64,000 nt of DNA from Caecitellus pseudoparvulus (taxonomy: Eukaryota > Protista > Bigyra: Bicosoecida), in assembly GCA_965644315.1 (NCBI GenBank), contig CBFFRQ010000067.1:620001-684000 (forward strand), in the 5' to 3' direction. Within the stretch, counting starts at the first letter, position 1. Each line of letters starts with the position of its first letter. A program made the translations under genes and the position numbers. Under the pieces are notes generated by a model. It saw only the letters and a program-made list of their open reading frames with translations. It was not told the origin of the DNA and searched no databases. Positions 21,622-44,409 of this stretch are shown piece by piece.

Positions 21622-22953
21622 CTAGGATGCGCCGGCCCCTTCCACCCTGCGTCGCTTGGCACGCGACGCTGGCTCCAAGGGCTCTGGCGCACCGGGTGGT
21701 GACGGCAGGCTGTCCATGTGCTGCACACTACCAAATGGCGCCTCCACGCCCGGGCGCAGCGCCCGCAAGATGCTGTCAGCTTGCTCTGCGAGGTCTGGAC
21801 GGGAAGCCGCAGACACCATCAGCGCAGTGGCCTGGTCCACTGCCGTGGGTGTGGCGGGGCTGACATCGCCCCCTGCGAGGAGGGTCGCGCAGAAGGTGGT
21901 GACAGCCTTTGCCAGGTCCGTGTGCTCCAGGGGGGTGTCCAGGGGGGGGTGCGTCCCGACGTGGCCTCTCGGAGCGGCCTGCAGTGCAGCCAGGGCCACC
22001 TGAGCAGGTGTGAAGAGCAGAGGGCAGTCTGTCGTCTGTGCATGGGACGGAAAGGGGAGGGGGGGTGCTTGTGGCCTGGGTGGTGGTGGGGCTGTTTCAG
22101 GCAGCGCTGCAACGCACAAGGGAGTGCATGACCAGCAACCGTGCTCTCGCGTGCAGCTCACGCCACGCCTGCAAGGGAACCTCCAAGCCAGCAGCCTGGT
22201 CCTGGGCTGTGCCTTCCGGAGCGATGGCGGCACCTGCAGACGCCCTCAGCCGAATGCCCGCTGTGTCTTTGAACTTGGCCATGAGCCCCCGCAGTGGCCT
22301 GTATGGATGGTGCAGCGTCAGGTTGAAGCGCACGCCTTGCATGAACTCCATCTCGTGCTGCACGACAGAGGACTGCTCCATGGAAAGAAACTTGGCAGCT
22401 CTAGCCAGGAAGGGCCTGGTCTCGTTGAAAGGACACGCTTCCGCCTTGATGGCCAGCGCAAGTGCAGCAGGCCTGTGCAAAACGCAGGCGAAACGTCGCC
22501 TTCCTGCAGGAATGCCGGCCTACGCTCGCACGCACACGATGTCGCCAGGGTACACGCGCGCAGGGTGCCGATGGAGGAAGTATCTCTTGAATAGCACGAC
22601 CGCTGATGCCTGCAGCACCTCGTCCATCTGCAGCGCGGCAGTCAAACGAAGGAGCACCTGCTCAAAGTGCCGCAGCACCAGCGCACTCTCCTCCTCCGTC
22701 AATGCATGTCCATCCTGAGGGGCAGATGCACACAGGGTGTGCAAGCAGAACATCACACATGTGTTCGGAATCGTGGAGCTTACCTCCTTTGCCGATTCGA
22801 ATGCCTTGCCTCGAAAAGAGCCTGTGCGCAAAGGGAGATCGAGGTGGCTGGCGCACGCTTGGCGCGAGCGCTTCGCCAAAGCGGCGCCTCACCCAGCTGC
22901 TCTGGCGTGAACTGCCACTGCTTGGCCTGGCTGCTGCCACTGAATGCCGCCAT
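21622..22953 (-). CDS. CCNH: Cyclin H (4 introns)
   Basis: Spliced reading MAAFSGSSQAKQWQFTPEQL, LTEEES, ASAVVLFKRYFL, ALAIKAE, EMEFMQGVRFNLTLHHPYRPLRG, TDCPLLFTPAQVALAAL. Confidence 0.88.
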
Positions 22954-23044
22954 GGCGACATGCCGGCCTGTCCCGCTGCAACTATTGGGTTCATTTCTCT
23001 TGTGGTGTGTTTTGTTGCGAACGCGAATCGGAAGACGAAACGGG

Positions 23045-25110
23045 GAGTGCAGTGCTCGGCGCCTTGGCGAGCACTTGTGCGGCGTGTCAAGAAGGCGTCT
23101 TCACAGTGCTGCATTTGCTGCCCAACACCTGCACTTGCCCACACACCCTTGCCCACAAGGGCAGAGCCCTGGACATGACTGGCCGCCCTCTCCTGCCATA
23201 CGTGGTCTAGCCCGGGGTGCAATGCTGACTTGCGCGGGATCACGCCACGTAGCTCCCACTCTCACATCGCCACAAACCTGCCACACATGCATTTCCGGAC
23301 ACCCTTTTTCCGTGCACTCACAATGCATGCCCCAGCTGCACTGTGCGCGCAAGTCTCAAGTGGCCACTTTGTTCCAGCGGTCATGACCCTTCATGAGCTC
23401 GGCAAACGATGATTCCCTGCACTGTCCCATGCACACCCCACGTGTGTGCTCTTTCTCAATCAGAGCGTGGGGCTTTCCCTGCTGGTGGCAAAGCTGCCGT
23501 GCCCGTGTGTGGGCGTGGCCGCTTCCTTGCTCTCCGGGCAGCTCGCAGCAGCAGCATGGCGCGTCGTCCCTGCCGAGTGCTGGTACCAATCCACAAGACA
23601 TTCCTAGCTTCGCGCACAGCGATCGAGTACTTTTGCCTGACACTCAACGTGATGGAACGGCGTCCAGTCAAAGCTACCAGCTCACGCACGATGTCTGTGT
23701 GGCCCCTGGAGCATGCCTCTTCGAAGGCGGCCTCAGGCCCATCCTCATCCGCTGCGTGCACATCCACTTCCCGCGCCCCAGTCAAGGCCAGCAGCTCACG
23801 CACAACGTCTGTGTGGCCATTCTCGCATGCCAGTCGGAAGGCGGCCTCAGGCCCACGCCAATCCGCCGCGTGTACATCCACTTCCCGCGCCCCAGTCAGG
23901 CCCAGCAGCTCACGCACGATGTCTGTGTGGCCATTCTCGCATGCGTCTCGGAAGGCGGCCTCAGTTCTACCCTCATACCCCGCGTGCACATCCACTTCCC
24001 GCGCCCCAGTCAGGGCCAGAAGCACACGGAAGGAGTCTGTGTGGCCATAGCGGCATGCCCGTCGGAAGGCGATATCAGGATCAAGCCTGTTCACAATACG
24101 ATACAGTACCATCCCGCTGGTGAGGCCCAGAAGCTCACGCACGATGTCTGTGTGGCCTTCGAAGCATGATTCTCGGAGCGCGGCCTCAGGTCCAGCGGGA
24201 TCCGCCGCATGCACATCCGCTGCCCGCGCCCCAGTGAGAGCCAGCAGCTCACGCACGATGTCGAGGTGGCCATTCTCGCATGCCCATCGGAAGGCGGCAT
24301 CAGATCCTCTCCAATCTGCCGCATGCACATCCACTGCCCGCGCCCCAGTGAGAGCCAGCAGCTCACGCACGATGTCTGTGTGGCCACCCTCGCATGCCTC
24401 TCGGAAGGCGGCCTCGGGTCCGTCCTCATCCGCCGCGTGCACATCCACTTCCCGCGCCCCAGTGAGGCCCAACAGCTCACGCACGATGTCTGTGTGACCA
24501 TGCTGGCATGCCTCTCGGAAGGCGGCCTCAGGTCCACGATCATCCGCTGCGTGCACATCCACTGCCCGTGCCCCAGAGAGGGCCAGCAGCTCACGCAGCA
24601 ACTCAATGTGTCCTTCCTTGCACGCAACAAGAAACCCTTTCGTTGTGTCAGATCTGGACAAGCACTCCAGCTCTGCGCTAGACCACTGATGAAACATAAG
24701 CAGCAGTGCATCTGGCCGCGAAAGCTCACATGCGTCTAGCCATTCCACCCTCCGTCTCGACCAGCCGTCGGGTTGAGCCATGGCGGGGTGATGTTGCAAT
24801 TGGCGCGAGTGCTTTCGCTGACTGACACCCCTGCACGAACGGCACAATCTGCACAGCACAAGATCACAAGAGTGGTTCAAATCACAAGTTCAATTGCAGT
24901 GAAAAGTGTTGGCGTTGGTTTTGTCAGACTCTGTACAGTGCCTTGTTTGGCTGCGGGGGTGCTCAGAAGACCCACCCCCCCCCCCCCCCCCTGGCGAAGC
25001 AATCGAACCCGATCACAGGGATGTTGTCGACGCGTGCTCATTGAGCCTCATTGAAGTAACTTACCTGCTCATCACCTCGGTCAGCCACGCAAAAGTACTT
25101 CTAGACACGA
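23045..25110 (-). repeat. Dispersed duplicated cassette, copy 1 (ankyrin-repeat gene plus conserved flanks)
   Basis: Colinear similarity to 39661-41835 across ~410 bp downstream and ~330 bp upstream of the ORF; boundaries approximate. Confidence 0.9.
23456..24781 (-). CDS. Intronless ankyrin-repeat protein, N-cap plus 8 repeats of ~38 aa
   Basis: Unit VDVHAADxxGPEAAFRxACxxGHtDIVRELLxLTGARx; first ATG at 24781; basic C-terminal tail. Confidence 0.9.
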   Translation of the reverse strand: MAQPDGWSRRRVEWLDACELSRPDALLLMFHQWSSAELECLSRSDTTKGFLVACKEGHIELLRELLALSGARAVDVHAADDRGPEAAFREACQHGHTDIVRELLGLTGAREVDVHAADEDGPEAAFREACEGGHTDIVRELLALTGARAVDVHAADWRGSDAAFRWACENGHLDIVRELLALTGARAADVHAADPAGPEAALRESCFEGHTDIVRELLGLTSGMVLYRIVNRLDPDIAFRRACRYGHTDSFRVLLALTGAREVDVHAGYEGRTEAAFRDACENGHTDIVRELLGLTGAREVDVHAADWRGPEAAFRLACENGHTDVVRELLALTGAREVDVHAADEDGPEAAFEEACSRGHTDIVRELVALTGRRSITLSVRQKYSIAVREARNVLWIGTSTRQGRRAMLLLRAARRARKRPRPHTGTAALPPAGKAPRSD

Positions 25111-25895
25111 TGTTGCTATCACCCAACTGGGTGCTGTGCAGAGGAGCCGGCTTCGCCTGCAATTCGTGTTCCTGCAATCCGCCAGTGTCTCACCTTGCGA
25201 CTGCTGGACCTGCCTTTACCCACCCAAGTGCACCTCCGAAACCCTACAGGGATGCCATGCAGCGGCAAGGGAGCTTTGTGAGCGTGCTGCTCACCTTCGA
25301 CATGAACAGCCTGTTTTCACGCCTGCTGGCGGCCGGCACGGCTGCGTGGGAGAACCACCGTCCCGCCGCCGCACAAGGCCACTGGCATGTCGCCAAAGTG
25401 TTCTACTTCCACTTCGCCACCTGCACCTTGCCTTCGTACCACTTCGTTGCCCCCTACCCGCACACTTCCGCAGACAGCCGTGCAACAGACTGCATTCCTC
25501 GTCGAAAGATCCAAGTCGACGATGCAGAGGAAGGCAGTGAACCCCGCCTGGAGCCCCTGCACATCGCTACCACCCGATGACTCATCGGACGACACGCCAC
25601 CGCTGGAGTACTGCTGCCAGTCCAGCTGCAGTGCTCCTGCACCGTCGGCCGCACTGAGCGCGTCAGGTGCAGCCTCGGCGGCCTTGTCAGTCGACTCTCG
25701 CGCAGCGCCCGACCGTGGCACGGCCTGGGGCGACTGCTCCTTGGCCTGTGCCACGACGGGTGGGCTGCGGTGCGTGGTGGAGGAGAACTGGGCGCCAATG
25801 GGGCGATCCCTGTGTAGAGCCCTGAGGCGCAGAGCCAAAGCAGTCCTTCCCAGGCACAAATGCCTTGGTCAGGGAGGGACGCCAGCACGCGGGTT

Positions 25896-28800
25896 TCATT
25901 CTCCCGGGGTTCGCTTGGGAATGCGCCCTTCTGACGTCAGCTCCCCGCCTGCGGCACGAGTCGCGCGGCAGCACATGTCTTCGAACTGGGACAGGGACAT
26001 GGCTGGCACCAGCGTCACATGCGGCAGGGCTTCGTTCGGCACAGTGGGTGACGCCTGAGCTTCGGGCTGTGCAGGGGCTTCTATTTGCTCTGGCCTGCCC
26101 AGCTCGACGCATGACGGCGCAGGTGCAGCAATCGCAGGCAGCGGAGTCACCGCCACGGCACCACTCACACTGTCAGCTGCACACGCAGCATTTGGTTCTT
26201 TGGACAAGGAGGCGTCTGCATGGCCAGCGTTGGCTCGGCCATCAAAGGGACACCGAGCCGCCCCGGGCGAGAAGAGGACCTCCACTCGGTGCCGGGCAGG
26301 GTGGGTTTCGTCCACTTCCAAGTTTTCATACACACGCAAGACGATGTGCGTGAGGTAGTCCAGCTCGGGCGTTGCGGAGAGGAACTGCCGCACTTCTGGT
26401 GCAAGGCCAGGCTCACCTGGCACAGCCCAGCACCGCACGACGTTCAGCAACGTGTGCAAGTGTGACTCCGATGTGAAGTACAGTCTCGTGCGAATGGGCG
26501 GGTCAGCGGCGCTGGTCGCTTGCCCGGGCTCTGCCCAAGCCTGGGAGGCTGCAGAGCTGCACCAGCTCTCACCGGTCGTCGCGTGCACGGCTGCTGCGGG
26601 GGACTGGCACGAAATGGGGCGTGGGGGGCTGCTGCGCCGTGGGATGACTATGGCTGGCGAGGCAGCCTCGGGCGAGGCGGAGGCTGGCACCTCGACAGGG
26701 GAGTGCACGAACGGGGTCACGGGCGCAGTGGACACGACCGCCCTTCCATGCAGAGGCATCGTGCCCCCCTGGAAGTCTTCAGAAGCCCCTGCAGTGCCCC
26801 CCTCGCATGACGAGTTCTGCTGCGGCTCTGCGTCACCCCAGAGGGCCACTGAGCCCACGCCCCGCAGGCGCGGACTGATGAGGGGTTTGTGGGCAAGGCT
26901 TTGCAGCGTTTCCGGGGCGCTGTGCCGGCGCTGGCGTGCGTACGGGTGCTGCGTGTGCTGCAGGCGGGAAGGGGAGGGCGTGGCTGCGGCACCTGCCGCC
27001 GCCGTTGCCGTGCTGACGCGCACTGCAGGGGCAGGGGCAGGTAGAGCCAAAGGCGTGCCAATCTCTCGTGCAAGACTGTGGAGCGGGGCAGAGACGTCAC
27101 CGGCACCGTGGGCATGGGGCGTGACTTGTCCCGTTGCGGGAGGGGGGGCGTGTGCAGGGGGGTGTTCGGGCGAGGTGGGCGTGGACGCTTCGTCGACGCC
27201 GTGGGCTGCAGTGCGCACGTCAAAGTACAGCTTCCGCAGGAGGTGAAAGCACACTGCCGCCGCGATGGTCTGCTTGTCCTGCAGAGTGATGCCGTACTCC
27301 TGTGGCACGACCAGGTTCGCCAGCGCGCCAGCAAGGGTGTAGATGGGCAGCAGCGTTTCCCGCCCCAGAAGTTGCCAGTTGTGCAGGGCGTCGTACTTGA
27401 TGCAGTCGTACACGTCGGGGATCTTGGAGATGTCAAATGACCCAGTCCGCGCATTGAACACTTCCTCAGCCAGCTTCCGCCACCGGTGATGCATGAGCCA
27501 CAGCGTTTCGCCGGCGTAGTACTGAGGCTGTGCACGTGGCGCTATGAGCCGACCAATGGTGAAGTCGGCAGCAATGACGGACGCCATGCCAGCCGTGCCT
27601 GCTGACTGTGCTGCTGAGGGGGGGGCGGGGCGTGGCGGCACTTGAGCAGACGGCCGCAGCGTGGAAGGGGGTTTCCGCACACACCGCACCCCCGCGGCGC
27701 CGCCACTTCCTTGCACCTCGTCCAGGGCCTGCTTCAGCCTCTGCGTCAGCTGTTGGATGAGGGAATGCAGGCGTGTCAGCGCTGCGCGTGGGTCATTCCC
27801 TATGCTCTGCAGGGCCCTCAGCTGCGAGGTGGCCCCGTGTGGCGCCACTGCCCGCACAAGGGCTGGGCTGACTGAGGCGCACTCACCTGCCAGAAGTGGG
27901 TGCACGCCAGTGCCCTCGTCTTGCCCGCAGGGGTACTCTCCCTCGTGCAGCAGGGCAGCTCGCAAGCGCTGCTTGTTCGCACCTTGCAGCTTGCGCGCGT
28001 CGCCTTTGGAGTCCAGCATGGTGCCGGTGTTGTCGTACCGCACGAGGGAGGCTAAGATTGGGGTCAAGTCCCCCTCCAGGTCTAGGAAGCCCTTCGTGAA
28101 GCTGGCTGCCGTCATTTGCACGCGCCCTTCGTCTGATGCGTAGATTTTCAGGTCGTGGCGGTGGGACGAGTGCAGGCGAAGCTGTGCCGAGGATTCGTCA
28201 GGGTACAGCACTTGGCGGAAATGCCGGCCCAGCGCCTCCGCCTGCTCCCGCCCACGGTGGGTAAGGACGCCACCCCACTTCACGACCAGCAGTGCTTCCA
28301 CCGGCACCTCTTCCCCGCCGCCCTCTGACGCCGTGAGGCTTGGGTCCCTGCTGGCGCTGATGCTGTCGCAGCGAGGTCGGCACGTGGTCGCAGAAAACGC
28401 CGACGAGCTGCCCTTGCTGGCCACTGCGCCGACCCTGGGGCCCGAGAAATCCCTCGAGTACGCCCGAGATGGCCTGCGTGGCAGCGACACGGCTGACTCT
28501 GGCACTCCGCTGAGCACTCGCAGACGCTGCAGCATTTCCGGCGTGCCAAGCGCCTCGCCCTCCGCCAGCCCCCCCTGTGCGCCCAGCACGCTGGCATTGT
28601 CTGGGCCGACATCCCACGCGCCGCTGGAGCGCCGGGAGGCATCTGTGTCAAAGCGTCCTCGCCCGCCCTCTGGCGTCAGTGGTGCGGCGGGCAGTGACCC
28701 GGGCTCCACCACAGCTGCCGCCGACAGCGCCAGGGGGGAGGACTTGGCCATGCCGGGCTGGCTGGCACAGTCCTCCAAGGCAGAGACGCAGTCAGAGACG

Positions 28801-30389
28801 ACGGCTTCGACGGGAGGTGCGGCGGCGGCCCACTTGGTGGGCTTTAGCTGCACCTTGCGGTTGGTGCCCGAGAAATTTCCGCCCTTCTCCAGCACAGCCC
28901 GAATCTGCCGCAGCTTCTCCACATCCTCCCCGCCCAGCCCGCAGCCTGTGCCGCCGTCGGTGGCGTGCTCTGCGCAGACCCTACCGTCTGCCTCCTCCAC
29001 CAGGGCACGCACGACAGCCAGCACTTGACCCAGAGCGATGGCAGACTTGAGTTTGGCTTCCGATCGCGGGTTGGGGGCGTGCTCCCCGAGCAGGGCCAGG
29101 AGGGCGGGGTGGGACACCTTCATCTTGATCTTCTGCTTAGGTGTGCGGTCGCCGTGCCGGATGACGGCAGTGATGCCGCGCAGCACCTCACCTGACGGCA
29201 GCGGCGTTTCGGGAGTGCTGGTGCTGGACAGGGGGCGGTCAAGGCGGGGCCGGGACGCCGAGCCACGCCTGCGGGGCCCGCCAAACCGCCCACCCATGAT
29301 GGCGTGCAGTGGAGGCAGGCCAGCACCACGCAGGGAGTGTGCAGCACGCGTGGCCACTGGGCCCAGCACCTTCAGCCGGTGCGGTGCTACGGAGCGCAGC
29401 ATGATGACCGCCAGAATGGAAGCGGCGTCGTCGTAGTACTTGCCCGACTTCTTCACGAAGGACCAGCCGTTCACATCGCAGACATACGACTGTGTGCCTG
29501 TGCGCAGCATGTCGAAGCCGCAGACGTTCTGCTTGAACGCGAGGCAGACCTGCCGTGCGATGCGTTTCTCAGCAGGCGTGAGCAGGATTGGGAAACGCAT
29601 CTCCTTGCCCTCCGCGTCCCGCTGCACGACGCCGTCCACGACGGGGCTCTTGCGGGCTTCTGCATGGGCATAGTCAGGCCCCACAAGGTACAGCTTGATG
29701 TCTGTTCCCTGCGTCATGATGAACTCCTCGTAAATGAACGAGCCCTCCCGCCGCACGGAGTTGATGTGGGGGTAGAACTGCGAGGACTTGTTGGCAACTT
29801 TCCGGAACAGGCGCTTGCTGCCGCCCCCCAACCTGCGTGGGTAATAAATGTACACGCCGTGGTCCTCTGCGTCCACCGGCTTCTCCACGAAGGGCTTGTC
29901 GAGCCGCTCGCCGTTGATTTCAATGTAGTCTTCGGCTTCCACCACGACGGGCTGCGCCGCCCCGTCGCGCGAACACACGATGTGGCGCGGGGTGGGGATG
30001 CCTGCCCGCACGAGTTTCGTGTAAAACGCACGGCGGTCCCGCAGAGTCAGCTCCGAATGCAAATTGTTAACGCAGAACGGGCGGCGCAGGCGCACATACC
30101 GCAGGGCTTTCTCGAGGGGGAAGCCGCTGGAAAAGAAGGCGATGAGGCAGTCCACGACGGGCCACTCTTCCACGGGGGTGTCTGCCAGCATCGCGTCGCC
30201 GAAGTACACCGCTTGGAAGTGCCCCGTGGCTTGCAGGCGCTTGAGAATCTCCTGCATGGGCTTGCTGCGGGCTTTCTTGTCCCGTGCGCAGATGCCCAGG
30301 GAGAGGGGCGCGAGAGTAATGGACTCCGAGCCCTGTCCGCCTCGGCCGGCACTTCGTGAGCGGGATGGAGTGCCCGGTGATGCCGCCAT
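25896..30389 (-). CDS. VIP1: Inositol hexakisphosphate/diphosphoinositol-pentakisphosphate kinase (ATP-grasp kinase plus histidine phosphatase domain)
   Basis: KKARSKPM, DCLIAFFSSGFPLEKA, KPFVEKPVDAEDH, HAEARKSPVVDG, CDVNGWSFVK, RHGDRTPKQK, FDISKIPDVYDCIKYD, RTRLYFTSESH. Confidence 0.97.
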   Translation of the reverse strand: MAASPGTPSRSRSAGRGGQGSESITLAPLSLGICARDKKARSKPMQEILKRLQATGHFQAVYFGDAMLADTPVEEWPVVDCLIAFFSSGFPLEKALRYVRLRRPFCVNNLHSELTLRDRRAFYTKLVRAGIPTPRHIVCSRDGAAQPVVVEAEDYIEINGERLDKPFVEKPVDAEDHGVYIYYPRRLGGGSKRLFRKVANKSSQFYPHINSVRREGSFIYEEFIMTQGTDIKLYLVGPDYAHAEARKSPVVDGVVQRDAEGKEMRFPILLTPAEKRIARQVCLAFKQNVCGFDMLRTGTQSYVCDVNGWSFVKKSGKYYDDAASILAVIMLRSVAPHRLKVLGPVATRAAHSLRGAGLPPLHAIMGGRFGGPRRRGSASRPRLDRPLSSTSTPETPLPSGEVLRGITAVIRHGDRTPKQKIKMKVSHPALLALLGEHAPNPRSEAKLKSAIALGQVLAVVRALVEEADGRVCAEHATDGGTGCGLGGEDVEKLRQIRAVLEKGGNFSGTNRKVQLKPTKWAAAAPPVEAVVSDCVSALEDCASQPGMAKSSPLALSAAAVVEPGSLPAAPLTPEGGRGRFDTDASRRSSGAWDVGPDNASVLGAQGGLAEGEALGTPEMLQRLRVLSGVPESAVSLPRRPSRAYSRDFSGPRVGAVASKGSSSAFSATTCRPRCDSISASRDPSLTASEGGGEEVPVEALLVVKWGGVLTHRGREQAEALGRHFRQVLYPDESSAQLRLHSSHRHDLKIYASDEGRVQMTAASFTKGFLDLEGDLTPILASLVRYDNTGTMLDSKGDARKLQGANKQRLRAALLHEGEYPCGQDEGTGVHPLLAGECASVSPALVRAVAPHGATSQLRALQSIGNDPRAALTRLHSLIQQLTQRLKQALDEVQGSGGAAGVRCVRKPPSTLRPSAQVPPRPAPPSAAQSAGTAGMASVIAADFTIGRLIAPRAQPQYYAGETLWLMHHRWRKLAEEVFNARTGSFDISKIPDVYDCIKYDALHNWQLLGRETLLPIYTLAGALANLVVPQEYGITLQDKQTIAAAVCFHLLRKLYFDVRTAAHGVDEASTPTSPEHPPAHAPPPATGQVTPHAHGAGDVSAPLHSLAREIGTPLALPAPAPAVRVSTATAAAGAAATPSPSRLQHTQHPYARQRRHSAPETLQSLAHKPLISPRLRGVGSVALWGDAEPQQNSSCEGGTAGASEDFQGGTMPLHGRAVVSTAPVTPFVHSPVEVPASASPEAASPAIVIPRRSSPPRPISCQSPAAAVHATTGESWCSSAASQAWAEPGQATSAADPPIRTRLYFTSESHLHTLLNVVRCWAVPGEPGLAPEVRQFLSATPELDYLTHIVLRVYENLEVDETHPARHRVEVLFSPGAARCPFDGRANAGHADASLSKEPNAACAADSVSGAVAVTPLPAIAAPAPSCVELGRPEQIEAPAQPEAQASPTVPNEALPHVTLVPAMSLSQFEDMCCRATRAAGGELTSEGRIPKRTPGE

Positions 30390-30756
30390 GTCGCTGGGTG
30401 GGACCTAGGGAATACAGCGTCGCCAAGCAATTTCCGCTGCCCGTCCGCACCAAGCCAGCACTGCAGGCCTGGAGCGACGCAAGCAGGCTGGGCAGCTCAG
30501 TGCCGAGAAACTGGGATGATGGGGGGTGTGATAGCTGCCAGCAGCCTTCCCCAGCTTCTGCCTGTGGGCTGCAGGAACCAGCCACGCTCTGTAGCTGCGA
30601 CTGCTCACGAATCTTGCCTCAACTCAGTGCCAGGCAGCGCAAGCAATGCGTCCCACTCCCACCTCAGCACACTGCGCAAAGTGGGCGGGGAAGGGGCTGC
30701 AGCGCGAAAATGAGGTCCTTTTAATTGTGTCATGCATTAGCTGTACCCTCCGCACC

Positions 30757-33700
30757 TCACGCGTCGCTGCGTGGGCTGTCTTCCCGCCGTGGCGTGGCTG
30801 CCTGCGCCAAGGCCTGGTTCGTGGCTGAGATCTTGTCCAGGGCCGTCATGAGCGTGGTCACGCGCGCCAAGTTCACCGACGTGGGGGACAGCACGGGCGC
30901 AGACAGCTCCGCCTCGATGCCGTCGTCGTGGGTGCGGGAGCGAAGGGGCATCACCCCTACCGCCCTCGCGGCTGGACCAACACTGCCCCCCGGACCCCGT
31001 GAAGCCCCCGACCCGGCTCCCGTACCAGAGCCCGTGGAGAAGGATGACGTGAGCAGGCCAGACGCACCCCGCGCGGCCACGGGGCTGGGGGGGGGCTCCT
31101 CCCCCTCACCCCCCCCCGCTCCAGCCGCTGCCAGGATCCGCTCTCGGGCTGCAGCCGTCACTAACACAGACCTGCTCAGGCGCTGGTACCTGGCGGCAGG
31201 GCCATCCCCGGGACTGTGCCGAGGGGGGTGGCCCAAGGCGGCAGTGGGCGGCACCTCACTCACAGACAGCGTTCGCCCAGTGCCCCCCCCTAGACCCAAG
31301 TGAGGGGGGGGTGCCTCAACCCCCTCGGACACGGCGTCCAGGCCTGTGGCTGAGCTGTGGCCGGGCGTGGAGGCCTTGGAGACCGACCCGTTGCCGCCCG
31401 TGCCCTGACTCGTCGGGGACTCCGCCCCCGTGCTGCGTTTGCTCAGTGACTCCACCGTGCTGACTCGCGCCGCCGACAGAGGCCCGCTGTCCATGGAGTC
31501 CTTGCGAGATACCAAGGACATGCGGGTGACTGCGGACAGCTTGGAGCGCGCCCTGGACAGCTTGGCGCTTGAGCCGGCAGACAGGTGCACTGACTTGCGG
31601 CGAAGGCGTGTGAGCATGCGGCGTGCGACGATGTCCAGGCCCTGCCCCAGTTGCTGAAACGCAGGAGTCATGCTCTCGATGCTGGCCGACACAGCTGCCC
31701 GCGCAGCTAGAACCTCCGCACGTTCAGACGTCATGAGGTAGGTCGTGGCAGCGGCGCTGGCTGCTGCGGGTGAGGGGGTGTTGGGGGGGGGTGGGCTGGG
31801 CCCCGCACTCTTCGTGCCCAGCCTGCCCAGGAAGGAGCTTGCGAACCGCCCCAAACCCGTCCCTGGCGCCCCGCCGCCGCCGCCACTGGGCCCACCTGGG
31901 CTGTACCACGAGCCAGTGTCACTGCCCGGACTGGAGCCCTCGAACACTTTGTGCAGCTCCGTGCCTGGCCGCGGCAGTGTCCCGCCAGCTGCGGCGGCGG
32001 CTGCGGCGGCAGCTGCGGTGCCACTGGCACTGGCAGGGGTGCCGCCCCCGCCTCGGGGATGGGATGCGCGGAAGGACCGCTGGAGCTTCTGCACGCCACT
32101 GGCGGCGGCGACGACAGCGGAGAAGCGTGCCACTGCTGCCAGGCTGCGACGGCGTGTGGAAACCTCTGGGGCGGGGGCGGTGGGGCTGGTGCCGGCAGTG
32201 GGGGTGGTGGAGGAGGGGGTGGAGGGGAGGTTGGGAGGGGTGTCAGGGGGGGGGTCGGCAGCTCCCTGCTTCCCCTCCCCAGCCTCATCCACCCCTGGAC
32301 TGGGCGTCTGGTCTTCAGTCACTTCCACCACGAGGGGGGGTGCCAGGCTGGCCCGGTGGCGCCGACCCCCCCCCTCGGACAGCAGACTGGCCAGGGCGTG
32401 ACCAGGCGTGGAAAAAGCGCCGTTTCCACTGCCCCGGGCAGGCGAGTATCCGGAACCGTGGTGTGAGGATGCGAAGCTGCCAGTGCGACTGCCCCCCACT
32501 TCGGGCGACCCGGCATCCGTACTAGCGTGGCTGCCGAGGGTGGAGGCGGAGGGGAGGGAGACGCCAGACTGGGCCGTGAGGAGGGACGTGCTGCTGAGCA
32601 CTTTGGACAAGGACTTGACGCCGCCCCCCATGCGGCCGACGATGCTGCGGCGGCGAGCGGTGTTGTTCAGGGCGTTGAACCACGTGGGCTTGATGAGTGA
32701 CCGGGCAGCTGCACGTGCCACTGCCATGTCGAAGTTGACGGCTTCGTCCGACAGAGCCGCTCGCGGAGGGGGTGTGGCGTCGGCAGCAGTGTGTGTTTGT
32801 GCAGGTGGTGCTGGGTGCAGAGTGTGGCGCGCAGGGGGGGGTGGGGCGTGCTTGCGAGGGGGGGGGGCAGCTGGGGTTGTGGAGCCAAGGACTGGGTTGC
32901 TGGCCATGGCGCCGCCCCGACGGGGGGATGTGCCCCCTGACGTGCTCTCCTGTATAGTGTGCAGGTCTGTGCCGCCTGCCACCTGCGCAGCGGGTGTGCC
33001 CCCGTCCCCTGCCGCGAGCTGGCCCCCCTTCAACCGCACGGACTGCGACAGAGCCGTCATGGCCGCCACGCCACGCAGCCGCGCACGAACGGCGGGAATG
33101 GCCGGCCGCTTGTCATCTGAGCGGGGCAGGAAGCCCCCCTCGTCATCGCTGTCTGCAAAGAGCTCTGATGCCTGGATGATGCCGTCTGGCGGCGCCAGGG
33201 CACGGGCCAACTGACGCTGGCGCAGTTGCCGCAGGAGGCGGAAATTCTTCACCGCTGCAGCCGTGGCAGAGGATGACGCGGCCCACGTCCACACCAGGCG
33301 TGTGGACTCCAGTGACGTGTGGTGCGCATAGATGTCATTCAGCGAGCTGAGCGCCTCCGCCAGCAACTCACTGATGTTGCTCAGGCGTTCGCGCATGGCC
33401 AGCCCCACGCGCACTTGTGTTTCCGCCACCTTCTTGGGGCTGCGCTCCTGCCGCAGGGCGTGCAGCTTGCGCTCCTTCATCTCCAGGTCCAGGCGTATCT
33501 CCTCTTCCAGCTTGAACTGGGCCTCCGCCATGGTGATGAGAATGACTGCGTGTGCGGAGGAAGGGCGTTCGCAATGCTGCCCAGGCTGCGACGCCAGGAT
33601 CGGCCGCGGCACGCACCACCAATGAACAGGTTCAGCACCAGCAGGTTAGCGAGGACACAGAAGGAGACGAAGAAAATGGTCGCCAGGAGCGGCTGCGGGT

Positions 33701-34792
33701 CGCTCCAAATGCACTGGTCCTGGTGCCCGCTGTAGCCGTACACTTCGCATCCCTCGATCTGGGTGTACATGACGTCCGTCCAGTCCTCCAGTGTTCCAGC
33801 TTGGAACAGGGACAGGAACGCCACGTGCAGGGTGCCCATGCCAATGGGGTCGTTCTTGGCGTACAGGGACACTGCCAGCACAGCGAAGAAGTAGTACAGC
33901 AGCCCAAGCAGCATGGCAATGTAACCGATGGAGGACAGCGCCTGAGCCAGCCCCAGCACCAGCACGCGCAGCTTGGGCAGCGCCCGCACCAGGCGAAGCA
34001 CACGCACGACCCGAATGAGGCGCACTGTGCTGACCGCAGCGGCATCTGCGCGGGGGCGGGGAGCGGAGGCACGTGTGCAGCTGACGGGGCGTCGTGGCGA
34101 ACGCCGCTTCCGACTGGCCACGCACCGACAGGCATGTACTGCACCAGCACGACGAGGAAGTCAAAGACGTTCCAGTAGTCCTTGAAGAAGTCCAAGGGGC
34201 GGTTGCCTGGGGTGGGGGCAGGGCGAGCTGGTGAGCAGGGGCTGGCCAGGTGCAGCAACGCCCTTCGCACCTTCCGCAGCGATCTTGAAGACCACCTCGA
34301 AGGTGAAGATGCCCACCAGCACCCACTCAATGCCGGAGGAAAATGCAGCGAAACCTGGCTGACTTGTCACCGAGTCGTACAAGGACACGCCCACCTGGGG
34401 ACGGAGGGGCGGCGGGGGGCAGGGTGTGCAGGTGGCCACGTCGCGTGCGGCCGGGGCGTGCAGAAACCACACACCAGCACGCCCGTGAAAACGATGGCCA
34501 GGATGAAGAACGTGACGAAGGCTGTGCTATCGCGGATGATCTGCAACTTCAACACCAGTTCGTGGTGCCAGTCACTGCCCCAGTACCCCAAGTGCTGAGG
34601 CGGGCCTTCCTCGTCATCGCTGCCCACGGCACTGTCTCCAGTCAGAGACGACACAGTGGACGGCTGCCGGGCAGGCTTGTGCGGCACTGGCGAGCGGGGC
34701 GCCCCTGTGCTGCTGTCGTCAAGCAGCTGCACCGAGGAGCCACCCCTGCTGGCGCCGCCTGCGGCCGGAGCACCGGCCCGTGAGGCTGGCAT
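30757..34792 (-). CDS. Single-domain (6TM) voltage-gated Na/Ca-type channel with very long low-complexity C-tail (4 introns)
   Basis: S2 IFTFEVVFKIAAEG, S3 FFKDYWNVFDFLVV, S4 VRLIRVVRVLRLVRALPKLR, filter TLEDWTD, S6 LVLNLFIGVI; only one repeat domain. Confidence 0.9.
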
Positions 34793-34975
34793 GGCCACGC
34801 CGGACGCGGCGGCGAAACGCCAATGTGCTGCTGCGGTGCCGCAAGGCGGATCAGCTGGGCGAGTGGAGGTGCAGCGGGGCGCTGAACACGAGCGCCAGAT
34901 CCCTCGCCAGCACTGTAACACTGCATTGTGAGTTGTGACGCAGGGGGCGCGCTGCTCGGGCCGCCGGCAGCGAGG

Positions 34976-36450
34976 TCAGCTCATGCGCAGCTGGTAGTCA
35001 CCGTTCTGCGTGATGTAGCGCACCCACGGCAGGGCTTGGTACCCGCTCTTCTCGATGATTTTCAGGTACCGCACCTGCAGGCCGGAGACAGTGAAGTAGG
35101 GGATTTCGAAGCGCAGGGAGATGGGGCGGCGCCAGGAGGCCTTCTCCTCATCCGTGTGCGTGACTGAGGGCAGGCCGAAACGCGCCCGCATGGCGTACTC
35201 GCGCTGCCCGTGGAACTGCTTGATGGTCCACTTGATGGCGTCCAGCGCGGGAACGTAGGAGACGCTGCCGACGCTGGCTTTGAACTGTGGCGTGTCCACA
35301 TCCTTGGGCACTGGAATGAGGATGTCCACGTTGTTTGCGGAGGAGCGGGCTTTGAACTGGCTGCGCGCCTTCACGACGTAGTCCACCTTGGAGCGCCCCT
35401 CCTGCACGACGGTCTCCACCCAAATCAGGGGCTTCACCTTGGTGTTCAGGCGGTAACTCATCAGCTCAAAATCGCCGTCGGGAGGGATGAAGGAGATGGT
35501 GCGGTTCTGGTCGAATTTGGTCAGGCGCACGCACTGGTGGAATTTGATGTCCTCCAGCTCCACAGACTTGCCGGCGCGCCCTGTCGCCGAGAACAGCGTC
35601 TTGTCATTCAGGCCCAGCTTCAGCTCCGGCATGCCGCTCAGCACGCTGCGCATCTGCACACTGCCCAGGATTTCGCTGCTCAGCACAGAGCCGCTGGAGG
35701 AGACGAGCAGGTTCAGCTTCTCCACGACGTCCAGGAACACCTCGTTCTTGGGGTGCACAATGCCTTCTGGACGCCAGCTGACGACGTTGGTGGCGGCTGC
35801 AGGCGGCTTCACGGCGCGCGTCAGCTTGGCCCCCCGCTGGAAGACGAACTCCTTCAAGATCTTCACCTCGCTCAGCTGGGGGTACCCGAAGTCACACACC
35901 TCGTCCAGCAGCTCGTAGATCAGCACGAAGTTGTCCCGGATGCTCTCTTCCTCCACAGACCCCAGGTAGTCCTTCAAGATCTGGCAGCGGCGGGTGTGGC
36001 AAGGGTGTGCGGCGCCAGCCCACGCGCTGTGCACTGGCAGCACGCACATCCATGAGCTTGTACAGGAACAGCAGCACTGTCGTCACATTGGAGTTGTGGC
36101 GGGACAGTGCCAGGACGTACAAGTTCCGGTGCTGCTCAGCAAAAGGGCGCGGCGTGCAGGCGACGAGAGCGGAATTTGCAGCGGCAGCCCCGCACCTGGA
36201 TGTACACGTAGTTCACGCCGTCCTCAGTGTACACTGGCTTGAGGTCCTCCGGACTGGTCTCTTGGATCTTCAGGGAGAACCTGTGGAGTGTACGCCAGAC
36301 GGGCAGTGCAGTGCTGGGAAGGGCGCAGTCACCTCGCCTGCCTGCGGCGCCGTACTTGTCTGCGTGTGAGCGAGGCAGGTCGCCCCGGTAGTCACGGAAG
36401 ATGAGGATCTTCCCCTTTGTGTCGAGGAAGTAGATGGCGGACAGCACCAT
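34976..36450 (-). CDS. AP1M: AP-1 complex mu subunit (3 introns)
   Basis: SAIYFLDTKGKILIFRDYRGD, EEESIRDNFVLIYELLDE, VSWRPEGI..KNEVFLDV, LSGMPELKLGLND, FEIPYFTVSGLQVRYLKIIEKSGYQALPWVRYIT. Confidence 0.97.
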
Positions 36451-36667
36451 GGCGGCGGGCGTGGAGGGCAGCCACAGGGAAGGCCACAGCACCAGGGTAG
36501 GGCGTGGTGAAACGCCAGCGACCTTGCCAACACACGCAGGCAGGCTGCAGCGCCAAGACGAGCAGGCTTTTGCGAGCAGGGGGTGCAGCAGGCAGTGCGC
36601 GCGAGAGCCAGTCCCAGGCGCAGAACTTAGAAAGTGTACATTACGCGGGGCCGTGTTACCGTGTGCG

Positions 36668-37869
36668 TCAGGGCGCTGGCCCTGCCGCCGCTTGGCCAGC
36701 TGCGCTGCCACCTGGCAACGGAATGTCACTGTGGTTGGCTGGGAGGGGCTCCGTCGTGAACCACTCGTGCTGCAGGGCAGCCTCCATGGACACCCGCGAG
36801 GCGGGGTTCAGCGCCAGCATCTTGGACAGCAAGTCTGTGGCCTGGGGCGTCACTCGCGGCACGATGCTGGGCCAGGCTGGTGCCGGGATGGTGCGTTTCG
36901 GCGGCGCCCACCCCGGCAGCAGCGCATGGCCAGGCCAGGCCTCCTCTGTGGGCGTCCCCAGCACACGCCAGATCTCCTTCACCTGTGCTGCGTTGCCCTC
37001 CTCCGCGGCCTGCAGGAGGGGGCGGCGAGTCAACACCTCCGCCGCAACGCAACCGGCAGCCCACACATCCACAGCTGGACCATAGTGCCGCGCTCCCATA
37101 CACAGCTCCGGCGGCCTGTACCACTGCGTGAGCAGCTGAGGGTGCTGGGCCTTGCGTCCTTCGGGGATGGGTGCAGCCAGTCCGAAATCTGCCACTTTCA
37201 GCACACCGTCGCTGTCCAGCAAGCAGTTGTCAGGCTTCACATCGCGGTGCAGAAAGCCGGCCGCATGCATGGCCGCCAGGCCACGCAGCATGTCTTGAAT
37301 GAGCGTCTTGGCGTGTGCCTCGGTGTACTTGATGCTGCGGGTGGACACCACCGCCTTCAGGTCTGTCTTGGCCAGGTCTGTGCCGTGAGAGTGGGGGCAA
37401 GTGCTGGAGCTGGCGAAACGTGTGCTTGCCAACGCTGCCCGCACCGATGACGAGGTTGACACGGTCGTTGAGGAAAAAGACATCCAGCATGCGCAGGCAG
37501 TTGGGGTGGTCCAGCTCAGTCAACACCTGCAACTCCTTCACGGCGGCGATGTTCACTCCCTGTGGCGAATCGGGGGATGGCTGGCCTGCCGAGTTTCGCC
37601 AGCGTTTCGACACGCTCACACTCACGTCTTGGTACTTTTCCCTGGAGACTTCCTTGATGGCCACGCGCCTGCCTGTGGCCTTGTGCTCCTGTGGGTGACC
37701 GGGGCCAAGGGGTCATGTCCGCCTGCGCTGCTCTGCCCAGCGCCCTCCTCACGTATTCGTGCACCTCGCCATACGCGCCCTTGCCCAGGAAGCGCACGTG
37801 CTCATACTCCTTCAGCCGAGCACGCCCCTCTACATTCACGTCCACCACCAATGCAAGCTCTTCTGCCAT
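36668..37869 (-). CDS. CDK7: Cyclin-dependent kinase, CDK7/CAK type (3 introns)
   Basis: [32 protein letters not shown] (cf. DGINRTALREIKLLQEL), [29 protein letters not shown]-terminal F..EPLP..IPLP. Confidence 0.8.
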
Positions 37870-38377
37870 GCCGCTGAGGTGTCCACCGGCCTGCCCCGCA
37901 CTCAGAGGCAGCCGTGCCCTACGAGGGAGTGGCCAGCCGGCCGTGCCTCTCTGTGTGTGGGCTGTGGCTGAGGTGGCAACAATTGCTGCATGAAAAGTCT
38001 GGCACTCATGGGCAGCTAGGCACATGTACAGTGTGTGTGTTTTATTTTGTTTGGCTGACTGACGCGCCCCCCCTGGCACGGTGCTGGCCCGAGGGCTCGC
38101 CTGTCTGTGCGGAGTTTGGCTCCTGCGACAATCCACAAGTCAAGCGGGCAGCGCACTCACTTCACACTCCACCCTGAAATGAACCCCATCGTTGGCACGT
38201 GGTGCGTCCATTCCAGCTCATCCGTTGCTTGCACAGCCCCGCCCCTGCATTGCGCTTCCACAGCGGCAGTCGCAGCGTGAGGCCACCAGCACCAGCAGCA
38301 CAGCTCTGCTGAAACGCGCGCCCGGCAGCAAACCACGCGCCGGGCAGTGTCCCATCCAGAAGCACGAACCCGCAACC

Positions 38378-39536
38378 ATGGCCGCCGATGATGCCGCCCG
38401 TGGGGAGCTGTTTGCTGGTGCTGAATCAGACACGCCTCAGTTCGGGTACGTGCTGTGGCTGCCGGGCAAGTTACGGAGTGTGCAGTGCAATTCCCGCACC
38501 AGGCCCAGCCTCTGTACGGCACAGGATTGACACGGAGGTGTTGTCCAGCATGAACGAACGGTGCAAACTCATGACAGAGCATGTCGACTCCATCAAGTGC
38601 GTCTCACTGCCGGGTGCCAATCGCCAGACGCCGCCGGCCTCGCCTGCGGCTGGCGCAAAGGCAAGCCTCCCCACCTCATGCACCACCCTGGCCGCCGCTT
38701 CCTGGGCACAGTGCCGACACACAACGCATTGAAGAGTGCACAAGCAGGACCGGCACCGCCTTCACACCCGAAGCCATGGATGGTGCGTGCTCGACACCTG
38801 CCGCCGAGCGCTGTGCCACACACTTCGCACCTCCGCACCTGCAGGGCTGACGAGGGAGGTCAGCGAACTCACTGAATCCTCACGCTCCAGCACGAAACAG
38901 TGCAAGGGCCTGCTGGAGGAACTGAAACGCATGGGCGTGCAGCTGCGACAGGGCGCCTCTGGCGCTGACCCACGGGGCCAGGCTCAGTACCGCCTCTTCC
39001 AGAACCGCTACCACGCCATGTTCTCCATCTTCCACAAAGCCGTTTCGGACAACCAGGTCGCACGTGCGACCTTCAAGGAACGCGTCACGGAGCGAGCCGT
39101 CTCCCAGGCCAAGCTGCTGTTCCCTGACAAGTCGGACGAGGAGCTGTCCAGCATGGTGACGTCCAACCCGCAAGCGCTGGAGCAGCACCTGCAGGCGCCA
39201 GAGGTGGTCGCACACGCCGAGGTGCAGGATGTGTACGACGAAGTGCAGGAGCGCAACCAGGCCATCAATGAGCTGGTGCGCAGCATCAAGGAAATCAACG
39301 ACATGATGAGTGACCTGGCTGTCCTGGTGCAAGAGCAGAGCGAGCAGCTGCAACGCATCGACGCACAAGTGGGCTCGGCAGTCGTCCGCATCGAAAAGGG
39401 GAACAAGGAGCTGGAACGGGCCATCCAGTACCAGAAGGCAGCCCGGCGCAAGTACTGCTGCATCGCCATCGTCGGAGTGGTCATCTTGCTGGTCATTGTG
39501 GGCTCGGTCATCCCCGCCACAGTGTCCAGGGGGTGA
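38378..39536 (+). CDS. Qa-SNARE, plasma-membrane syntaxin-like (introns at the 5' end)
   Basis: SNARE helix EVQERNQAINELVRSIKEINDMMSDLAVLVQEQSEQLQRID, then YQKAARRKYCC and a C-terminal TM helix. Confidence 0.92.
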
Positions 39537-39660
39537 AGCTCCCATGCCTGGCCACACACCCCACTGGAATGCAGCGTCGTCGTCACACCCCAATAGGGAG
39601 GCTTCCCTGCACAATGTCCTTGCCCTATCCTGCATTGCGAACGTGGAGTAGGAGGGGGGA

Positions 39661-41835
39661 GGAGTGCCCAGGTCGGCGCCTTGGCGAGCAGGGGTGCAGC
39701 GTGTCAAGGAGGAGCCTTCACAGTGCTGCATTTGCTACCCAACACCTGTACTCGCACACACACCTTTGCCCACGGACACGGAGCATTGGGCGTGACTGAC
39801 CACCCTCTCCCGCCATACGCGGTCTAGCCTGGGGTGCAATGCAGACTTGCGCGTGATCGCCCCATGAAGCTCCCACTCTCACATCGCCACATACCTGCCA
39901 CACATGCATTTCTGGACTTCTTTTTCCGTGTGAATGCAATGCATGCCCCAGCTGCACTTTGCGCGCAAGTCTCATGTGGCCACTTTGTTCCAGCGGACAT
40001 GACCCTTCATGAGCACGGCAAACGATGATTCCCTGCATTGTCCCATGCACACCCCACGTGTGCGCTCTCTCTCAATCAGAGCGTGGGGCTTTCCCTGCTG
40101 GGGACGCCGCTGCAGTGCCTGTGTGTGGCCGTGGTCGCTTCCTTGCTCTCCGCGCAGCTCGCAGCAGCAGCATGGCGCGTCGTCCCGGCCGAGTGCTGGT
40201 GCCGATCCAGGAGGCATCCTCAGCTTCGCGCACAGCTTCTGGGTATTTACGCCTACACCACAGTGGGATCGCTCGGAATCCAGTAAGTTTTAGCAGCTCA
40301 CGCACGATGCCTGTGTGGCCATTGCGGCATGCCTCTCGGAAGGCGGCCTCAGGTCCACCCAAACCCGCCGCATGCACATCTACTTCCCGTGCCCCATCCA
40401 GGCTCAACAGCTCACGCACGACGTCAAGGTGGCCAGCCTTGCATGCCAATCGAAAGGCGATCTCAGGTCCACTCGCATCCGCCGCGTGCACATCTACTTC
40501 CCGTACCTCGCTCAGACCCAGCAACTCACGCACAATGTCTGTATGGCCTCTGTAGCATGCCCATCGGAAGCCAGCTTCAGGTCCAATCCCATCCCCCCCG
40601 TGCCCATCGACTACCCATGACCCAGTCAGGTGCAGCAGCTCAAGCACGATGTCTGTGTCGCCACCCGCACTTGCTGCCACAGTTCCACACCAATCTGCTG
40701 CGTGCACATCCACTTCCCGCGACCCAGTGAGGGCCAGCAGCTCACGCACGATGTCGAGGTGGCCATACACGCATGCATGTCGGAAGGCAGCCTCACGCTT
40801 TGCATGAACATCCACTTCCCGTGCCCCGCTCAGCGCTAGCAGCTCACGCACGATGTCGAGGTGGCCATTGCGGCATGCCCATCGGAAGGCTGCCTCAGGT
40901 CCATCCTTATCTGCTGCGTGCACATCCACTTCCCGTGCCCCGCTCAGCGCTAGCAGCTCGCGCACGATGTCGAGGTGGCCATACACGCATGCATGTCGGA
41001 AGGCAGCCTCACGCTTTGCATGAACATCCACTTCCCGTGCCCCGCTCAGCGCTAGCAGCTCGCGCACGATGTCGAGGTGGCCATTGCGGCATGCCCATCG
41101 GAAGGCTGCCTCAGGTCCATCCTTATCTGCTGCGTGCACATCCACTTCCCGTGCCCCGCTCAGCGCTAGCAGCTCGCGCACGATGTCGAGGTGGCCATTG
41201 CGGCATGCCCATCGGAAGGCTGCCTCAGGTCCATCCTTATCTGCTGCGTGCACATCCACTGGTCGTCGACCACCCTTCAATGAAAGCAGCTCACGCACTA
41301 CATGCACGTGTCCATTCTCACAAGCTGCCCGGAAGCCAGCCTCAAATCCGGAGCAATCTCGCTTATGCACATTTACCTTCTGTCGACCGGTTAGAGCGAG
41401 GAGCTCCTGCACCAACCCAATGTGCCCTATCTTGCAAGCGATAATAAACCTTTTCGTCGCGTAGTGACTGGATAAGCTTTCCAGCTCCGCGCTGCCACCT
41501 GTCAGAGGCATAGCGTGGTGGCGTTGCAGTTGGGGGAAGTGCTTTCGCAAACCTTCACCCCCGCACGACTGGCACAAGCTGCACAGCACAGGATCCCGAG
41601 TGGAGCCGAAATTCCACGTTCAATGCAAGTCGAGGAGCAGGGTTTTGGTTTGTCAGAGTCTGTGCAGTGTCCTGCCTGGCTGCTGGGGTGCTCGGCTGAC
41701 ACGCAACCCCCCCTTCGCGAAGCAGTCGAACACGTTCCACCGCTGGGCTGTCAACGCGAACTTCATCAGCTTCATTGAAATGTCCCACCTGCTCATCCCC
41801 TTTTCTCGCCACTCTCAGGAACATACAGACGCGAT
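39661..41835 (-). repeat. Dispersed duplicated cassette, copy 2
   Basis: Colinear with 23045-25110 in the same orientation; boundaries approximate. Confidence 0.9.
40072..41511 (-). CDS. Intronless ankyrin-repeat protein, N-cap plus 10 repeats (38- and 34-aa units)
   Basis: Same unit as 23456-24781, near-identical C-tail, ATG at 41511. Confidence 0.9.
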   Translation of the reverse strand: MPLTGGSAELESLSSHYATKRFIIACKIGHIGLVQELLALTGRQKVNVHKRDCSGFEAGFRAACENGHVHVVRELLSLKGGRRPVDVHAADKDGPEAAFRWACRNGHLDIVRELLALSGAREVDVHAADKDGPEAAFRWACRNGHLDIVRELLALSGAREVDVHAKREAAFRHACVYGHLDIVRELLALSGAREVDVHAADKDGPEAAFRWACRNGHLDIVRELLALSGAREVDVHAKREAAFRHACVYGHLDIVRELLALTGSREVDVHAADWCGTVAASAGGDTDIVLELLHLTGSWVVDGHGGDGIGPEAGFRWACYRGHTDIVRELLGLSEVREVDVHAADASGPEIAFRLACKAGHLDVVRELLSLDGAREVDVHAAGLGGPEAAFREACRNGHTGIVRELLKLTGFRAIPLWCRRKYPEAVREAEDASWIGTSTRPGRRAMLLLRAARRARKRPRPHTGTAAASPAGKAPRSD

Positions 41836-43730: not shown

Positions 43731-44409
43731 GTTGGAGAGAGAGAGCCAGTGCCGTGAGCCCGCAAGACCGCTTTGGACCTGCGTGGGAGGGAAGCGAAGG
43801 TGCCCAGCGCATGCACATGCGCGCCATGCACAGAAATGCACAGACAACAGGAGTTGGCGATGTTTATTTCGCTGCGCAGGGGCACTGCACCGTGCCGGCT
43901 ACTGCTGCAGTGCAGTTGGAGCCGGCTGTGGATGAAGGCAACCGCAACAGGGGAAAACAAACAAGGCACGGCCCGGGCCAGACGCCAACATGGCCAGCAC
44001 AACTGGACTGCGAAAAGAAAATCACTCCCAGCGCCTAACGTACTGAGGAAGGCGCAGATCGGCGGTGCGAGACGGATGCGGAAGCGGCCTGCGGCAGTGC
44101 ACTTGGTGGGCGTGGCAGTGCCAGGCGGAGGCAGCCTCCACGCAAACTGGGGGCCCTGACAGGAGGGGGGGGTGTCAGAGGCGTGCAGGAGTTGAGGTGA
44201 GCAAGTCCCCCACTCAGGCACTTGGTTTTATATTTGCGCACCCCTGCCACTTTCCCACCCCTTCACCGTGGCGTCGCAGCAGCAGTTGAGAGCAGCAAGC
44301 CTCGCCACTCCGCGGCCACCGGGACAGGCAGGGAACACAGGCAGCTCCACGTTGCGCCCAACGGCGGCCCTGTGTAGCCAGTGCCGATCCTCATCCGCAA
44401 GCCGCAGCC

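Follow-up and report, generated by a model that had tools for sequence, protein, structure and literature searches.

The closest described counterparts of the genes considered here are the ankyrin arrays of fungal NLR proteins. Those of Podospora are internally conserved, vary in repeat number and show positive selection at the concave face of the ANK array, a case of concerted evolution together with positive selection (PMC4986451). For highly conserved repeats, repeat exchange and occurrence outside fungi are on record, and about 6% of the repeat proteins that lack an ATPase domain also contain them (PMC13449251). Here we analyse two paralogous ankyrin genes, A and B, in a 64,000-nucleotide stretch of the genome of the bicosoecid Caecitellus pseudoparvulus (contig CBFFRQ010000067.1, positions 620,001 to 684,000 of the forward strand; "the window" below). 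It is fairly probable that they belong to a family of stand-alone ankyrin binders, lineage-restricted and expanded, in which selection keeps the binding face diverse while the scaffold is homogenised, and that the proteins serve as cytosolic protein-recognition adaptors.

The two arrays resemble those of the fungal NLRs (Podospora Pa_3_8560 type; PMC4986451, PMC13449251) in having very similar ANK units, about five positions of the inner helix and hairpin under positive selection (probable in the case of A and B), changes in repeat number, and probable repeat exchange between genes. Unlike the fungal proteins, they lack a NACHT/NB-ARC or effector domain (by Pfam, the neighbouring open reading frames (ORFs) being scanned too), have units of 38 and 34 amino acids, carry a C-terminal motif of their own and belong to a stramenopile host. 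In the fungi, repeat number is polymorphic between alleles, whereas here its change is known from the genes of one assembly, the searches having turned up no second strain of the organism. Compared with the internal identity of at least 85% per 100 amino acids that is used for the fungal repeats, a segment of gene B reaches 100%, and gene A 86% to its consensus and 76% pairwise. Positive selection on the concave face, another fungal feature, has statistical support here, which weakens to a p of 0.04 under the multi-hit model discussed below. Because the NOD domain is absent, genes A and B are not NLRs, though they would work like an NLR sensor module.

The principle of a conserved scaffold with a selected binding face is thus already known from fungal NLRs (PMC4986451), and hypervariation of the kind seen here is generic in ankyrins (PMC1261162), so that novelty of the principle is not supported. 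What the genes would add is an extension of this regime of concerted evolution plus selection to a stand-alone stramenopile protein, and they supply a natural 38-amino-acid ankyrin scaffold.

Variable positions and fold of the units

Ankyrin models are the only ones that match the two ORFs above the Pfam cut-off (Ank_2, E 7e-53 for gene A and 8e-49 for gene B), and the two marks of an ankyrin repeat, a profile match and a stacked helix-turn-helix-hairpin fold, are both present. The canonical length of 33 amino acids and the TPLH motif are not, the units being 38 and 34 amino acids long and devoid of TPLH. Among the 38-amino-acid units of the window, positions 8, 9, 17, 20 and 21 have an entropy of 2.0-2.8 bits and positions 11, 24, 32 and 34 one of 1.2-1.8 bits, the others being mostly at 0-0.9 bits. 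All of the variable residues listed in the initial annotation (in the loop, after FR and before GH) are present in the units. The framework codons are near-invariant even at silent positions, and the differences between units at the five variable codons involve several bases each.

A three-unit model predicted from 33 in-register sequences has a normal ankyrin fold (predicted local distance difference test, pLDDT, 94) and a template modelling score of about 0.78 against designed ankyrins; a full-length model was mediocre (pLDDT 71) because its input alignment was out of register. In the three-unit model, unit positions 7 and 10 pair in a beta-bridge, which puts the variable positions 8 and 9 at the turn; helix 1 carries positions 17, 20 and 21. 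When the units are aligned to the designed protein ANK-N5C, their positions 8, 9, 17, 20 and 21 correspond to canonical positions 2, 3, 10, 13 and 14. Structure prediction and register thus both support the earlier proposal that the variable sites lie on the ankyrin binding face.

Unit position 17, the residue after FR, corresponds to canonical position 10, which is fixed in classic DARPins. In the ANK-N5C library this position was randomised together with 2, 3, 5, 13 and 33, and the set was called one continuous binding surface (PMC4308713). In a set of 15,000 natural ankyrins, the most variable positions include 2, 3, 5, 13 and 14 (PMC1261162). The variable sites of the window therefore coincide with generic ankyrin variable positions, and the placement of the variability is ordinary. 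Fold and variable positions are common to genes A and B, natural ankyrins and DARPin/ANK-N5C (PMC1261162, PMC4308713); in contrast to natural and designed ankyrins, the units have five additional residues (one at the hairpin exit and four after helix 2, which the model folds into another short helix), TPLH is replaced and canonical position 5 is not variable.

The 38-amino-acid unit given in the initial annotation accounts for most of gene A, where Tandem Repeats Finder reports a 114-bp period with 8.1 copies; the exceptions are one 37-amino-acid unit in gene A and, in gene B, two 34-amino-acid units, one 39-amino-acid spacing and one unit disrupted by a deletion. In gene B the program reports several arrays, one of them with a 216-bp period. 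Units have been gained and lost in frame, and the postulated repeat shuffling is evident as unit duplication and deletion. Three units of gene B of the type KD/W/RN are exact recent copies, 0-1 nucleotides apart, which leaves about 12 distinct canonical units across both genes.

Diversity and selection

With a codon model of our own, M2a was favoured over M1a (likelihood ratio (LR) 36, p 1.5e-8), with a ratio of nonsynonymous to synonymous substitution rates (omega) of 5.9 at positions 8, 9, 20, 21 and 32. For a set of DARPin positions chosen in advance, the codon model gave an omega of 3.1 versus 0.39 (p 1e-5). The omega of the framework is 0.1-0.2, and both ORFs are intact. A tree-free comparison in gene A, using the five variable sites picked after inspection of the units, gave a second-position diversity of 0.57 at the variable codons versus 0.19 at four-fold framework sites; the latter are unsaturated, as cross-species four-fold diversity is 0.51. 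The contrast recurs in the relatives at loci L002 (0.63 versus 0.24, four units) and L003, and simulations of neutral evolution with gene conversion reached the diversity gap in 0-2% of the runs over the parameter sets covered. The scaffold is homogenised within the array: framework sequences differ at a mean of 11 of 87 nucleotides inside gene A versus 15.5 of 87 between A and B, and the variable codons differ at 8.6 of 15 nucleotides in every comparison.

Several observations weigh against an interpretation as selection. A multi-hit model that includes double and triple substitutions fits better and reduces the dN/dS signal to an LR of 6.5 and a p of 0.04 for A and B together, gene A alone being non-significant. 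Position 32, which lies outside the binding face, was also scored as selected, a sign of conversion-driven homoplasy. The tree-free contrast with the position set chosen in advance has a P of only about 0.10 (A and B), the changes between near-identical copies from different samples are not enriched at the variable sites, and older paralogue sets are saturated at silent sites, so that the contrast is blank there. The copies seen in this genome number two, in a window of 64 kb. The GC content at third codon positions (GC3) is 0.63 in gene A and 0.58 in gene B versus 0.79-0.84 in adjacent housekeeping genes, and this low value, together with the broken unit in gene B, is compatible with low expression or decay. 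Diversifying selection on the variable sites is thus likely, not established.

It should be noted that part of this evidence would be expected of ordinary ankyrins without any arms race, a possible though unlikely explanation. The binding surface would be unconstrained, recent repeat duplication would make the scaffold look fixed, and short conversion tracts from unseen paralogues would bring in the multi-base changes. The generic hypervariation of these positions in ankyrins (PMC1261162), the loss of most of the selection signal under the multi-hit model and the missing allelic excess at variable sites all fit such a history. Nevertheless, neutral sites should follow silent diversity, but the variable sites of gene A exceed it about threefold, and the neutral simulations seldom reproduce this gap. 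Moreover, tracts from diverged paralogues should carry silent differences into the adjacent framework codons, but those are near-invariant.

The C-terminal tail and the wider family

Most members of the family end in a motif that is absent from the initial annotation, consisting of W-x-G, a loop of variable length and R-x-G-R-x-x-hydrophobic-hydrophobic-L-x-R. This tail has no match in Pfam or PDB, and no SOCS, F-box or PRANC model matched it. Its profile retrieved 46 clusters among 1.84 billion proteins, essentially all of them from the ankyrin family of the window; six of ten new matches that were checked contain ankyrins, two are tail-bearing fragments and two are noise. The motif is thus family-specific.

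A protein search yielded 92 relatives, the best of which (about 60) have the repeat type of the window with a spacing of 34 or 38 amino acids. An expansion of the 38-amino-acid form is seen in the marine metagenome series ZHEN20-1, where it occurs on eukaryotic contigs in tandem clusters of 2-5 genes. Loci L005, L027 and L028 have tandem clusters of the family. The 34-amino-acid form is expanded elsewhere, with 13 loci in metagenome Ga0307982, seven ankyrin ORFs in 9.7 kb at locus L010 and pairs at L001, L003 and L035. In related genomes, paralogues are thus numerous and frequently lie in tandem. Judged from the sequences, genes A and B are members of an expanded, lineage-restricted family in related protist genomes. 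No prokaryotic member was confirmed in GTDB contigs, and matches to PADLOC models appear to be due only to common ankyrin repeats. Literature searches retrieved nothing on the family or on the virus genome GVMAG-S-1103017-74 treated below, and the family, its tail and its virus-borne relatives appear to be undescribed.

The repeats of the window group with those of the relative P0009 (support 96/93), and the tail end resembles the P0013/P0094 type. P0009 itself has a different N-terminus of about 500 amino acids and no tail. This combination suggests module exchange between family members. P0009 (L002:1078-3231) as well as P0036 and P0076 carry the repeats most like those of the window, fused behind an N-terminal region of about 500 amino acids. 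This region matches nothing in Pfam or PDB, and its interpretation as a pseudokinase was rejected (hhalign probability 0.6%, no PDB match). Broken units and split ORFs also occur in relatives. At L028:342-2122, two near-identical family genes of 256 amino acids lie in tandem, 1010 bp apart, and differ mainly in their last 20 residues.

In the favoured explanation, unequal crossing-over and gene conversion would homogenise and shuffle the scaffold and create new arrays, and selection would maintain the diversity of the binding-face codons, a step that is statistically supported, not proven. As inspection of both proteins revealed no hydrophobic leader, they may act as cytosolic protein-recognition adaptors. 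The variable concave face would bind fast-evolving partners, most likely those of viruses or other intracellular invaders, and the constant tail would dock on a single common host partner or effector and thereby replace the NOD domain of NLRs. A role in antiviral or prey sensing, as proposed initially, is plausible for such candidates. To our knowledge, little is known about the intracellular recognition of viruses and other invaders in free-living heterotrophic protists. For these organisms the genes would provide a candidate recognition family that combines a selected face with a constant tail of its own and has relatives borne by viruses.

A variable ANK array followed by a short constant C-terminal module is also the layout of cullin-RING ankyrin adaptors (ASB/SOCS, FEM1 and poxvirus ANK-PRANC proteins). 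Genes A and B have the same succession of array and tail but, unlike these adaptors, no recognisable Skp1- or Elongin-binding box, and a ligase link is conjecture.

Giant-virus relatives

The repeat signature of the window occurs in several genes of a giant-virus metagenome-assembled genome, GVMAG-S-1103017-74, and the repeat type was also found on two ORFan-rich, high-GC contigs that are virus-like by gene content (L032 and L037). Giant-virus ankyrins (Mimiviridae, Marseillevirus and Pithovirus, some with F-box or RING domains) are likewise non-TPLH arrays in multigene families, and viral models are among the top structural neighbours. The differences are that the identity to named viral proteins is only 15-28%, that genes A and B have no F-box or RING domain, and that they lie among eukaryotic housekeeping genes.

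These relatives raise the alternative, which we consider quite improbable, that the family was acquired from or exchanged with giant viruses and spreads by duplication and undergoes birth-and-death turnover with little current host function, the viral proteins being host-manipulation adaptors encoded near ubiquitin-system genes. One viral copy does adjoin a cullin gene, RING genes are located near others, and atypical GC3, broken units and split ORFs would fit such turnover. But both ORFs of the window are intact, with a low framework omega (0.1-0.2); the viral copies are not matched by the tail profile; and the family tree gives no direction of transfer between host and virus. As bins can also be contaminated, the virus link is a lead only.

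The cullin gene is uninterrupted and stands tail-to-tail with the family gene at L032:10001-14576, near a cyclin and two kinase genes. The contig (175 kb, 61% GC, ORFan-rich) looks like an unclassified giant virus and was not found in IMG/VR. P0006 has no match in that database, so that its viral origin is argued from gene content only. At L008:787-8864 of GVMAG-S-1103017-74, ankyrin genes are clustered with an eIF5/eIF2B-domain gene, a RING gene and a faintly Skp1-like ORF, whose identification as Skp1 was rejected as non-significant (E 1.7). In the same genome, L007:25-672 and L008:25-654 have an identical start of about 35 codons and then diverge, possibly because of a repeated end or a joining artefact.

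Taken together with the favoured explanation, the viral copies would allow a wider but rather improbable scenario: bacterivorous flagellates of this lineage would possess a NOD-free intracellular recognition repertoire of many stand-alone binders, diversified through shuffled repeats and selection. The tail would connect all of these to one effector, perhaps destruction by the ubiquitin system, and giant viruses, as opponents in an arms race, would bear the repeat type as a mimic or counter-measure.

Improbable readings: nucleic-acid code and mobility

The initial annotation had also considered a code-like nucleic-acid binder. The near-identical scaffold with few variable residues per unit and the basic tails (net charge +16 and +12) recall a TALE-like reader in which the variable residues of each repeat would specify a base. 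However, the arrays are acidic (net charge -30 and -12, isoelectric point 4.9 and 6.1, for genes A and B), 35% of the residues at variable sites are D/E versus 15% K/R, and the geometry is canonical for ankyrins, with five variable sites spread over a flat face suited to binding proteins, where a TALE-like reader would have a single recurring pair; a nucleic-acid code is therefore unlikely, and we regard it as extremely improbable. We consider it equally improbable that the 2-kb unit is a mobile element, or that it undergoes directed mutagenesis of the kind driven by a diversity-generating retroelement. Both non-coding flanks are common to the copies, but the inverted repeats listed include no terminal ones, the flank alignments show neither a poly(A) tail nor a target duplication, the ORFs scanned contain no reverse transcriptase or transposase, all majority bases vary rather than adenine alone, no separate template repeat was found, and the flanks have no match at any of the related loci or viral contigs compared.

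Gene organization and neighbouring genes

Both ORFs proposed in the initial annotation are open and lie on the minus strand (Table 1). They are indeed uninterrupted, but the term "intronless" carries little weight, since the neighbouring GlyRS and PPIP5K genes are also long uninterrupted ORFs. The duplicated unit of A and B reaches past the coding sequence, over about 430 bp on the 3' side and about 300 bp on the 5' side. The simplest reading of the pair is a whole-gene duplication that would have been followed by homogenisation of the 3' end. In the 3' flank, neither an open frame nor a significant RNA fold (z -0.56) nor an Rfam match was found, and comparison of both flanks with the family proteins revealed no coding remnant and no match beyond the N-cap. 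In the 5' flank of gene A, a long homopolymer of C (read as G along the coding strand) at window positions 24974-24992 is shorter in gene B and could be a homopolymer sequencing artefact.

Table 1. Features of genes A and B and their flanks (positions in the window)
Feature	Position	Strand	Description	Basis or remark
Gene A, coding sequence	23456..24781	-	441 amino acids; short N-cap, ankyrin array, basic C-terminal tail	Open ORF, Pfam
Gene A, ankyrin array	23654..24676	-	1 cap-like unit, 7 canonical 38-amino-acid units, 1 aberrant 37-amino-acid unit (about 23996-24109)	
Gene A, C-terminal family motif	23522..23662	-	W-x-G, variable loop, R-x-G-R-x-x-M-L-L-L-R	No Pfam or PDB match
Gene A, 3' flank	23044..23455	-	Non-coding, common to gene B (87% identity)	Ends ~90 bp before start of cyclin-like gene (named by inspection)
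Gene A, 5' flank	24782..25077	-	Common to gene B (71% identity); presumed promoter/untranslated region	
Gene B, coding sequence	40072..41511	-	479 amino acids	Open ORF, Pfam
Gene B, ankyrin array	40270..41490	-	38- and 34-amino-acid units, one deletion-broken unit (about 40612-40713)	
Gene B, recent internal tandem duplication	40693..41227	-	216-bp block (one 38- and one 34-amino-acid unit), 2.5 copies, 94% matches	
Gene B, C-terminal family motif	40138..40278	-		
Gene B, 3' flank	39661..40071	-	Common to gene A	Ends ~125 bp from stop of convergent syntaxin gene
Gene B, 5' flank	41512..41801	-	Common to gene A	

The window is gene-dense eukaryotic DNA with a GC content of 58-72%. A scan of ORFs with Pfam, in which spliced genes were read as separate, unjoined pieces, identified GlyRS, SMC, an adaptor mu subunit, a protein kinase, PPIP5K and syntaxin as neighbours. 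Long ORFs at 42408-43847, 30757-33612 and 48467-50404 have no Pfam match. A spliced cyclin-H-like gene (21800-22953, subfamily named by inspection) directly follows gene A, and a CDK7-like kinase gene (36668-38139) lies about 2 kb from gene B; Pfam supports the kinase domain only, and the subfamily was again assigned by inspection. The GlyRS indicates that the host is most likely a Cafeteria-related stramenopile: it has no close database match, the nearest (70% identical) comes from the sample that also yielded the best ankyrin match, and a quick tree places both GlyRS sequences in a clade with Cafeteria roenbergensis (Shimodaira-Hasegawa-like approximate likelihood ratio test 100; single gene).

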